Below are positions 30,554-33,136 of a stretch of DNA of 64,000 bases, in pieces (within the stretch, counting starts at the first letter, position 1; every line of letters begins with the position of its first letter). Under the pieces are notes generated by a model. The model saw only the letters and a program-made list of their open reading frames with translations, searched no databases and had not been told where the DNA came from. Origin of the DNA: Oculina patagonica (Eukaryota); contig NC_135759.1 of NCBI RefSeq assembly GCF_052425735.1, forward strand, positions 40,238,001 through 40,302,000. Direction: 5' to 3'. The translations under genes and the position numbers were made by a program.

Positions 30554-33136
30554 ATGACGAAGAATTATCTTTTCTTCTTTTTCTTGGGTAAGTGAATCAG
30601 AGTTTTTATTTGAAATCAGAAATTTTTTGTTAGTTAGCGAGGCAACAAGCAGAATTCAGGAAATCAGTTTAATATGCGGTAATTAAAAAAGAAAGACGGT
30701 CCTCGAGCCGTCTTGTTTTTTTTTTTTCAACACAAGTTAAGCAGAAACATGTGAACTTAAAAAGGAAGAAAGTTGTGATTTTCTGCGTCCCTGCTTACAC
30801 AAAATCACTGAGGTATGATTGTTAAAATAACCACTGATACAGATTTATCTGAACGGAATTACCGAACGTACCGAGGGGCGAAGTAATCAACTTTCTTTAT
30901 GGGATGCAAGGTTTGGTTGATGAAAAAGCGAAAGCTCTGCATGCACGCGAGCAAATAAAATGCCGTTAATATCAGTCACATCTTTAAAATAAGGTACAAC
31001 TGACTGCTGTCGACAACTAAGTCAACGTCCGTATCTGCTGTACTTGTGAGGTGAAAAAGTAAGCTTTTATGTGGGTGGTGTTTAATGTTTTTCTCATTAG
31101 ATACAGTAATTGTAATTTATTGTAAAATACTTTATCACATATATAGCGAGAATTTTAAGCAATAAACCTTGCAAATAGAATTCTCTATTTGCTATATTTC
31201 ACATGTGAAAAAAGCGATACGTCCAATCAGCTTCGCGTATAGCTTTCTTCACATGTGAAAAATATAACCAATCAGCATTTAGAGTAGTACGACTCAACCA
31301 ATCACAGCGCGAGAATTCAAATGGTTTCCAACGAGGTTGAGAAAGCGAGCGGCAAGTTTGCTCCCGACGGCAGTTTATGTTTTGAAAACATGGCTACACG
31401 TTTTCTTCCTTTACAAAAGTTTGCCTTTTAAGAACTTTATGGAAATGCAAGCCAACAGAAACACGCTAAGCAAAACCTAAAGAATACAGTAGTGATAAAA
31501 AATCATTCTTCAAAGGCGAAGTGAAGACAGGCGAAGGCGAAGTGTCGATAAGTGAAAGCGAAGACAAGACTTTCATCGGAACTAACAACACATCCGCGGA
31601 CTTTCTAAGAATATTCAGGCACTTTTGGGATCGTCTTGGTTAAGTAAACTGCATTTTTAATCTTGATTCACGTGGTAATTATTGTTTAATTAACCGACTC
31701 GTTATGTTGCCACAATTTGTTCACAATTCGCCAGTTAAAGACTGTAATTCGCCAGTAGTTTATTCGCTTGTGGCGAAGTTTCCTCGATGCGATACGAAGT
31801 TTTCAACGTAAATGTAACGTAGTGTGTTTGTTTAAATAAAGTTTTTGTCTAGGAGAGTTTGTCGCCAGTAATTTTTTTTTACATGTATATTATTGAAATA
31901 GCGAATTCGCTTGTAAAGTAGCCTACGTGTAGCCGTACCCACCCCCCCGAGGAAAAGCGGGAGGGAAGGAACGACGTTCCTTCCCTCCCGCTTTTCCTCG
32001 GGGGGGGGGGGGGTGGGTACGGCTACACGTAGGCTACTTGTAAAGCTATGTGCATTTGCAGCTTTGTTTTCTCGCGCTGTTAACTGCAGCTGTTGTATGT
32101 CAAAAGTTTTAAACTGAAAAAATCGGCTTTAAGTGTTCAATGGTTGAATTCTTGTTATATATATAATAAACACATTACAGCATAGAAAGTGCTTTGTACG
32201 GATTTATATTCACTCGTTGCAAAACTTTGGAAAACTCACTCGTTCGCTACGCTCACTCGTTCGTTTTCCCAAAGTTTTGCAACTCGTGAATATAAATCCG
32301 TACGGCGCACTTTCTATGAAGTAATCTATATGTATTGGCATTCTCGTTTTTATGGTACAAATATATATGAGAAATACTATAAAAAAACTTCTGAATTATG
32401 TTTTACAGCATTGGTATGCAAAGGCTCCGCGCGACCTCTCAAAGATGAGGGTTCGGCCATATCGGCGGATGAAGGCTCCAGTATCGAGCATGATGAAGGC
32501 TCCAGTATCGAGCATGATGAAGGCTCCAGTATCGAGCACGATGAAGGCTCCAGTATCGAGCATGACGAAGGCTCCAGTATCGAGCATGATAAAGGCACCA
32601 GTATCGAGCACGCTGAAGGCCCCAGTATCGAGCATGATGAAGGCTCCAGTATCGAGCATGATGAAGGCTCCAGTATCGAGCACGATGAAGGCCCCAGTAT
32701 CGAGCATGATGAAGGCTCCAGTATCGAGCATGATGAAGGCTCCAGTATCGAGCACGATGAAGGCTCCAGTATCGAGCATAATGAAGGCTCCAGTATCGAG
32801 CATGATGAAGGCTCCAGTATCGAGCACGACGAAGGCCCCAGTATCGAGCATGATGAAGGCTCCAGTATCGAGCATGATGAAGGCTCCAGTATCGAGCATG
32901 ACGAAGGCTCCAGTATCGAGCATGATGAAGGCTCCAGTATCGAGCATGATGAAGGTTCCAGTATCGAGCATGATGAAGGCTCCAGTATCGAGCATGATGA
33001 AGGCTCCAGTATCGAGCATGATGAAGGCTCCAGTATCGAGCATGATGAAGGCTCCAGCATCGAGCATGATGAAGGCTCTCTCGCCGACGCCGAAGGCTCC
33101 GCTGTCGAACACAAGAGATCCAGCCTGTTTTACTGA
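30554..33136 (+). CDS. Putative secreted acidic His/Ser-rich tandem-repeat protein, (DEGSSIEH)x25, 253 aa; exons 30554-30587 and 32409-33136
   Basis: ATG with A at -3. Exon 1 MTKNYLFFFFL ends G|GTAAGT and acceptor ttatgttttacag| at 32408 joins in phase 1, giving signal peptide MTKNYLFFFFLALVCKGSA/RPLKDEGSA..., then 25 octapeptides, ending EHKRSSLFY*. AATAAA at 33266. Confidence 0.75.
31132..32328. mobile_element. Unclassified non-autonomous element with terminal hairpin (Crypton/Helentron-like) in the intron of the DEGSSIEH gene
   Basis: Short inverted repeat at about 31132 / 32146-32171 plus a ~150-bp terminal hairpin at 32176-32324; related element inverted at 41600-43031. Confidence 0.5.
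31919..32036. mobile_element. 118-bp palindromic TAG...CTA MITE with 9-bp TSD (AcademH-like)
   Basis: Near-perfect hairpin; TSD CTTGTAAAG on both sides. Confidence 0.85.
32468..33067 (+). repeat. 24-bp tandem repeat x25 (GATGAAGGCTCCAGTATCGAGCAT), coding for DEGSSIEH
   Basis: Exactly 600 bp = 25 units with no indels; degenerate in-phase units on both flanks. Confidence 0.97.

Follow-up and report, generated by a model that had tools for sequence, protein, structure and literature searches.

A 24-bp tandem repeat in a Ly6/uPAR gene cluster of Oculina patagonica is the body of a two-exon gene for a predicted secreted acidic octapeptide-repeat protein

A 64,000-nucleotide (nt) stretch of contig NC_135759.1 from the coral Oculina patagonica (hereinafter the window; all coordinates are positions within it) contains, inside a cluster of Ly6/uPAR-type (LU) genes, an array of 24-bp tandem repeats. 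An earlier note on this DNA had claimed that the apparent minisatellite is the second exon of a hidden gene for a secreted protein consisting mostly of DEGSSIEH octapeptides. The question raised by this locus is whether the array is coding at all and, if so, what such a repetitive protein might do. We find that the two-exon gene is real: a spliced contig, orthologous loci with the same exon plan and synteny, an identical gene model from Porites harrisoni in GenBank, and ratios of non-synonymous to synonymous differences (pN/pS) below 1 all support the model, which is right. With a probability of roughly 0.7, this single-copy gene encodes a secreted, probably disordered, cation-binding polyanion built of octads.

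The ATG exon, splice donor, phase-1 acceptor, fused N-terminus and AATAAA signal are all found where they had been placed (Table 1). The ATG at 30554 has an A at position -3 and an in-frame stop five codons upstream; the acceptor, ttttacag, ends at 32408, and exon 2 begins in phase 1. As proposed, the splice picks the acidic frame out of the several open ones: the joined coding sequence (762 nt, 253 amino acids (aa)) starts with MTKNYLFFFFLALVCKGSA/RP and reads acidic octads. In this frame (from 32411), the octads are preceded by LVCKGSARPLKDEGSAISA and followed, after the array, by DEGSLADAEGSAVEHKRSSLFY and the stop codon. The N-terminus resembles a signal peptide, as had been suggested, and is conserved across lineages: it has a hydrophobic core (mean Kyte-Doolittle hydropathy of residues 4-15 of 2.0-2.5 in all four lineages), small residues at -3 and -1, and a predicted A-x-A/[FR]-P cleavage site retained in homologues.

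Contigs of public sequencing runs were aligned to positions 30000-32700, and four runs were compared. The 30587/32409 junction was looked for in these transcript-like data and is matched exactly by a 299-nt contig of run X2, which skips the GT..AG intron and has 91 nt on the shorter side. Depth is zero in all four runs on the unique flank (30000-30454) and on the unique part of the intron (30637-31091), so the runs behave as RNA and not as genomic DNA. Contigs within the octad array are present in all four runs, and words of the 3' untranslated region (UTR) are shared by the RNA-like runs X6, X25, X26 and X2, a weak signal of 4-5 words each. Three differences between the X2 contig and the window (32452 T>C, 32458 C>T and 32470 T>C) occupy the third positions of GGT, GCC and GAT, respectively, and are synonymous in the acidic frame only.

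The array (32468-33078) has a period of 24, 25.5 copies, 94% matches and 0% indels according to Tandem Repeats Finder (TRF), and the unit table agrees with TRF on 25 indel-free octapeptides, as had been claimed. All 25 units read x-x-G-x-S-I-E-H, and 19 are exact DEGSSIEH. The degenerate units reported on both flanks are there, the 5' one in phase as described, the 3' one out of register by one codon. A genome-wide search for the 24-mer with up to 3 mismatches yields 25 matches in the 529-Mb assembly, all of them at the window locus and 0 elsewhere (the reversed 24-mer, used as a control, gives 0 matches); the repeat is not part of a transposable element. A second copy of the gene in the genome was found neither by an exon-2 DNA search nor by a family-profile search; the gene is single-copy. 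The CAT>CAC variant recurs at units 3, 6, 9, 12 and 15, i.e., at every third unit, which indicates growth of the array by 72-bp blocks, and the expansion to 25 units occurred by recent duplication of 24- and 72-bp blocks.

A search with the whole exon-2 protein against 5.8 billion proteins gives no match, with short homologues falling outside the length filter. A 66-aa N-terminal piece, by contrast in length, retrieves two proteins, and the resulting three-sequence profile retrieves eight clusters (E-values 2e-35 to 1e-14) that hold about 100 sequences from Tara coral metagenomes, other ENA assemblies and Logan assemblies. One cluster member is the GenBank entry KAM7448978.1, “hypothetical protein ABFA07_002986 [Porites harrisoni]”, of 85 aa, and its gene model is identical to the splice that we read from the contig. 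The metagenome gene calls have artefactual N-termini because TGA is read as Trp. The homologue contigs L012, L013, L014, L015, L024 and L025 all contain an ATG exon of 10 codons plus 1 base (31 nt) with the donor G/GTAAGT, a phase-1 intron within the predicted signal peptide, and an exon 2 that comprises the signal-peptide end (..SNALA/FP.. or ..CKAFA/FP..), 3-8 octads of the form ADEGSS[IV][GED], and a short tail, either SRAIKKIFKI (Porites type) or IVLKLSSLSF (ERZ27245415 type, similar to HKRSSLFY of the window). The octad columns that are invariant in the family alignment are D, E, G, S, S and I; positions 1 and 8 vary among lineages, and DEGSS is invariant across all. Octad motifs and accession numbers are mentioned in no paper found in the literature search, and the closest entry is a single “hypothetical protein”, in keeping with the statement that no described family was recognized. 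The DEGSS-octad family is small and undescribed apart from this one entry and, with the window being from O. patagonica, would span the deep split between robust and complex corals.

In three loci, namely the window, L024 (P. harrisoni) and L025, the repeat gene is followed by a convergent LU-type exon at a downstream distance of 1.7-2.1 kb. A tblastn search with the window exon detects it at 15061-15300 (-) of L024 and 12370-12558 (-) of L025 (E = 1e-16 to 3e-20), in both cases about 1.9-2.1 kb from the repeat gene, so that the three loci are positional orthologues. The window gene is a greatly expanded positional orthologue of a small coral gene that Porites also has, with an increase from 3-8 to 25 octads and replacement of Ala at octad position 1 by His in the window lineage. 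Between diverged Porites-type copies, pN/pS is 0.13-0.49, with pN (0.03-0.07) below the intron divergence (0.09-0.12); these copies have 3, 4 or 5 units and change by whole octads only. Such values point to a gene under purifying selection.

The mature protein consists of 234 residues (about 25 kDa, isoelectric point 4.1), without Cys, and is made up of E (22.6%), S (22.2%), G (12%) and D, I and H (11% each; 26 His). At pH 7 the computed net charge is about -72, compared with about -49 at pH 5.5. These features are best compatible with the following scheme. Exon 1 and the start of exon 2 are predicted to encode a cleavable signal peptide, and the rest of exon 2 the secreted protein, which would be a polyanion that traverses the secretory pathway in an intrinsically disordered state. 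Its working module would be the conserved DEGSS core; the carboxylates, possibly together with modified serines, may provide high-capacity, low-affinity binding of Ca2+ or other cations, and the histidines of the window lineage could add transition-metal binding and the pH-dependent charge swing. The skeletal organic matrix, mucus, and secretory or cnidocyst granules are all possible destinations.

Several observations weigh against this reading. Run X2 comes from a related organism and not from the source coral, and its RNA status is a guess; the spliced contig is a single one, with a low depth of 4.7, and has five mismatches, of which the effect on codons is known for three. Contig L012 contains a 1-nt frameshift near the 3' end (~925-935), before the last two octads. 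One of the five AlphaFold models is a beta-solenoid, with a predicted local distance difference test score (pLDDT) of 60, and cation binding, serine modification and disorder are read from composition only. As a further caveat, the array can be read without a stop in four of its six frames, so that an open frame alone is no evidence of coding. With regard to the frameshift, the ATG exon sought in orthologous loci is present in all loci that were read, and the frame is kept in all but L012. The expectation that these loci lack frame-breaking indels thus fails for a single metagenome contig and holds for all other loci, including L026, the sister contig of L012 in the ENA assembly ERZ27245415, which is intact, with 8 octads; the L012 frameshift may reflect allelic variation, a paralogous copy or a mistake in the assembly.

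The open frames are also an argument for the alternative of a minisatellite without coding function, or of a transposable-element fragment, in which the open frame and the nearby ATG arise by chance. Variation within the array is of little help here: the 17 variant cells include 10 synonymous and 7 non-synonymous ones in the acidic frame, which makes it the best frame by cell count, but a minus-strand frame ties, and the synonymous excess is not significant because the cells reduce to just 9 distinct changes (4 being synonymous when read in the acidic frame) and the units share ancestry. This excess was therefore rejected as proof of coding. The alternative is nevertheless already contradicted by the confinement of the unit to the window locus, the exact junction in the contig, the orthologues that keep exon plan, frame, synteny and pN/pS below 1, and the independent GenBank model, and its probability is close to negligible.

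Given that the gene is real, the possibility of a regular fold has to be considered. Under this alternative, the 25-unit protein adopts a beta-solenoid fold, for which bound Ca2+ or another metal may be required, with three octads (24 residues) per coil and ladders of carboxylates and imidazoles. In the best single-sequence AlphaFold2 model, each octad indeed forms one short strand and a coil comprises 3 strands (predicted template modelling score 0.52), and the nearest PDB folds are beta-solenoids; but the other four models score 35-41, a Foldseek search of the solenoid model against the PDB gives no match at E <= 0.001 (TM at most 0.36), and perfect repeats are prone to solenoid predictions. 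Furthermore, each octad has one hydrophobic residue and carries a net charge of about -3, no structure is predicted for the 8-unit homologue, and the 3-5 octads of other orthologues do not suffice to build a solenoid. The low-confidence model was set aside as evidence of fold, and we consider a solenoid highly improbable. The same holds, to a similarly slight degree of credence, for the bolder idea that the 25-octad His version folds upon binding Ca2+ or transition metals into a solenoid-like rod with three octads per turn, the ordered carboxylate and imidazole rows of which template or poison the growth of aragonite or act as a pH or metal switch in this coral lineage; if true, the metal-induced rod would be a physical property that the 3-8-octad orthologues lack.

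An apparent domain assignment bears on the same issue. The protein matches the Pfam profile PF22178, Gp5_trimer_C, the VxGxxxxx octads of which form a trimeric beta-helix, with 78 bits (cut-off 30.9), and the homologues reach just 15-18 bits. In control searches, the cut-off of another octad family, Cornifin, is exceeded by non-coding frames of the window DNA at 55-69 bits, and that of PF22178 by an unrelated DKGSTVTS repeat at 41 bits; any perfect octad repeat passes in this way. Given these controls, the absence of a PDB sequence match and the lack of a significant fold match, the Gp5_trimer_C identity is rejected as an artefact of periodicity. The 730 HMMER matches among 1.84 billion representatives were likewise dismissed as unrelated 8-periodic repeats (VKPLTHDS, KEFDEGVR, DKGSTVTS, GSEIKKDE and others), none of which contains EGSSIE, and the best scores in the ESM Atlas, 0.76-0.79, are under any useful level.

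Alternatively, the protein could be a component of the skeletal organic matrix in which a Fam20C-type Golgi kinase phosphorylates the S-I-E of each unit, after which it nucleates or inhibits the growth of CaCO3. The mature protein, predicted to be secreted and highly acidic, contains 25 S-x-E sites, this genome encodes two Fam20-domain genes, and the family has been found so far only in stony-coral-type sequence. None of the five K/R residues of the protein lies between positions 54 and 228, so that standard tryptic skeletal proteomics would miss it. In the Porites orthologues, however, the units read SIG, SVG, SID or NIA and only DEGSS is kept; S-x-E is present in the window gene and the ERZ27245415 homologues, and the His of the octad is lineage-specific, with Ala elsewhere. 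Hence S-x-E cannot be the ancestral function of the repeat. In addition, D and E account for 34% of the residues without the poly-Asp runs of known coral acid-rich proteins. A search of the text supplements to the paper on the skeletal proteome of O. patagonica (PMC9532382) did not retrieve the motif, a weak negative given that the files are small and the digest is tryptic. For the window species, the Fam20C and skeletal-matrix idea may still hold, if with low probability, and is weakened by the absence of S-x-E from the Porites orthologues.

Invariance of DEGSS alone would fit a recognition site for another modification, or a simple charge or turn module, equally well. One version of the former is a serglycin-like proteoglycan core, in which the DEGS of each octad is the site of a glycosaminoglycan or O-glycan and the product packages or hydrates secretory granules, mucus or cnidocysts. 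DEGSS is the sole part of the octad that is invariant across lineages, positions 1 and 8 being free to vary, as befits a motif recognized by an enzyme, and the order of acidic residues and then Gly-Ser is similar to what the xylosyltransferase consensus has in its N-terminal half; position +1, however, is Ser and not the strongly preferred Gly, and we regard this alternative as unlikely. Still less probable is a prepropeptide, in which the acidic repeat would be a spacer or neutralizing pro-region and cleavage at a basic site would set free a C-terminal peptide as the active product, in the manner of precursors of antimicrobial or signalling peptides. A basic site and a short hydrophobic or cationic tail do end the protein in all three lineages (KR/SSLFY in the window, SR/AIKKIFKI in Porites), and the Porites tail is cationic and amphipathic. 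Against this, the tails are just 5-8 residues long, their charge is not conserved, there is no Gly-basic amidation signal, and the best-conserved and expanding part is the repeat and not the tail. The preferred reading, a secreted octad polyanion, is retained.

The introns of the homologues are 198-502 nt long (2932 nt in P. harrisoni), compared with 1821 nt in the window, and most of the extra length relative to the 198-502 nt homologues is accounted for by repeat insertions resembling miniature inverted-repeat transposable elements (MITEs). Two such palindromic elements are present, the first of which (arms 31909-31948/32007-32046) has a centre of G/C runs. They are multi-copy: between 31092 and 32365, summed contig depth reaches thousands, with many mismatches and loose ends. 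RNA-like runs from three organisms have contigs in which relatives of the intron palindromes occur in extreme abundance.

The location of the gene inside an LU cluster, which had also been noted, is borne out by six Cys-rich Ly6/uPAR-type open reading frames (ORFs) in the window. Membership of the repeat protein in the Ly6/uPAR family (PF00021) was examined as well: the domain has 8-10 Cys, a three-finger structure and a CN end, and the repeat protein is without Cys. The repeat gene is a guest in the LU cluster, not a member. The LU genes at 34875-35222 (-) and 41310-41591 (-) have in common an unusual last exon, GCC..EDCN..C..CSK.ASCQSDKCNY with a hydrophobic tail, which is conserved with 48-67% identity at the same relative position in the Porites loci (L024, 15061-15300 (-); L025, 12259-12573 (-)); accordingly, the pairing of the repeat gene with this LU subtype is old. 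Elsewhere in the window, arrays of 22/41/48-bp repeats (TGTCGTAAATTGTAATAAC..) at 25291-25509 and 26713-26930, in opposite orientation and about 1.2 kb apart, look like terminal inverted repeat arrays of a transposon. Among the LU genes, there are also 8-bp microsatellite-like arrays at 49976-50843, 58292-58667 and 62164-63033, with up to ~110 copies of the units AAACAAGC, ACAGGGTT and CTGTAAGC. On contig C1 of the same genome, the two Fam20-domain exon series lie about 70 kb apart and are either a tandem gene duplication or an assembly duplication.

Table 1. Features of the octad-repeat locus, the LU cluster and the Fam20-domain loci (window coordinates except for contig C1)
Feature	Position	Strand	Evidence and remarks
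Minimum 5' UTR	30496..30553	+	Spliced contig of run X2 reaches 91 nt 5' of the junction; X2 depth bins 30455-30636
Exon 1, coding part, 34 nt	30554..30587	+	MTKNYLFFFFL + first base of Ala12; donor G/GTAAGT at 30587/30588
Phase-1 intron, 1821 nt, GT..AG	30588..32408	+	Exactly this stretch skipped by one contig
Two palindromic MITE-like elements	31909..32325		Arms 31909-31948/32007-32046 and 32174-32234/32265-32325; inverted-repeat search
Exon 2, coding part	32409..33136	+	Signal-peptide end, repeat array, short C-terminal tail, stop TGA 33134-33136
Last 8 residues of predicted 19-residue signal peptide (..ALVCKGSA)	32409..32431	+	Predicted cleavage before Arg at 32432
Degenerate in-phase unit DEGSAISA 5' of array	32444..32467	+	Frame translation
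25 tandem 24-bp units, DEGSSIEH octads	32468..33067	+	TRF, genome-wide pattern search, unit table
Degenerate units and C-terminal tail (DEGSLADA EGSAVEH KR SSLFY)	33068..33133	+	Tail similar to ..LKLSSLSF of homologue L026
AATAAA polyadenylation signal	33266..33271	+	130 nt 3' of stop
Cys-rich Ly6/uPAR-type ORF	1759-2223	-	ORF reading
Cys-rich Ly6/uPAR-type ORF	17288-17803	+	ORF reading
Cys-rich Ly6/uPAR-type ORF, last exon of convergent neighbour, synteny anchor	34875-35222	-	ORF, tblastn
Cys-rich Ly6/uPAR-type ORF	41310-41591	-	ORF reading
Cys-rich Ly6/uPAR-type ORF	49416-49799	-	ORF reading
Cys-rich Ly6/uPAR-type ORF	56595-56960	+	ORF reading
Fam20-domain kinase (PF06702), two near-identical exon series	Contig C1: 25112362-25115705 and 25182067-25184915		PF06702 loci; either Fam20B or Fam20C type

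Thus, a repeat of the kind removed by masking makes up the body of a coral gene that is conserved and transcribed, and this gene defines a small orphan family of predicted secreted acidic octad-repeat proteins common to distant stony-coral lineages. The six-fold expansion of the repeat together with the gain of His in one lineage presents a clean case of evolution by coding repeat number. Lineage-specific secreted polyanions are the class that supplies components of coral skeletal matrix and mucus, and they are systematically missed by tryptic proteomics and gene predictors. The gain is at the level of annotation, a well-supported gene with several candidate roles, and not a discovery about calcification.

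Among known systems, the C-terminal beta-helix of phage T4 gp5 shares with the window protein the 8-residue periodicity and a Gly in each octad. Serglycin-type cores are small secreted proteins that consist almost entirely of short Ser/Gly repeats flanked by acidic residues; their repeat is Ser-Gly, in contrast to the Gly-Ser-Ser of the window protein. Dentin phosphophoryn (DSPP, (DSS)n), like other Fam20C substrates, is a secreted protein with tandem repeats rich in Ser and acidic residues. Its family is a vertebrate one, and its unit has 3 residues. The window protein has an S-x-E in each unit, but no homology to DSPP, and its Porites orthologues do not keep S-x-E. Coral acid-rich skeletal proteins (CARPs, SAARPs, 'secreted acidic proteins') contain long Asp-rich blocks and structured domains and have been identified in skeleton proteomes. 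Like the window protein, they are secreted, strongly acidic, low-complexity, stony-coral-restricted and proposed to bind Ca2+; unlike them, the window protein is a pure octad array and is not known from any skeleton, and no search detects sequence similarity between the two. The closest counterpart is P. harrisoni KAM7448978.1, for which no function is described. Proteins of this type are of 85 aa with 3-5 octads, as opposed to 253 aa and 25 octads in the window, have Ala instead of His at octad position 1 and Gly/Asp instead of Glu at position 8, hence no S-x-E, and end in the cationic tail AIKKIFKI. Shared by the P. harrisoni and window genes are the two-exon plan, the phase-1 intron in the predicted signal peptide, the A-x-A/[FR]P cleavage-type site, the x-DEGSS-[IV]-x octads, the short basic and hydrophobic C-terminal tail, and the convergent Ly6/uPAR gene about 2 kb downstream.

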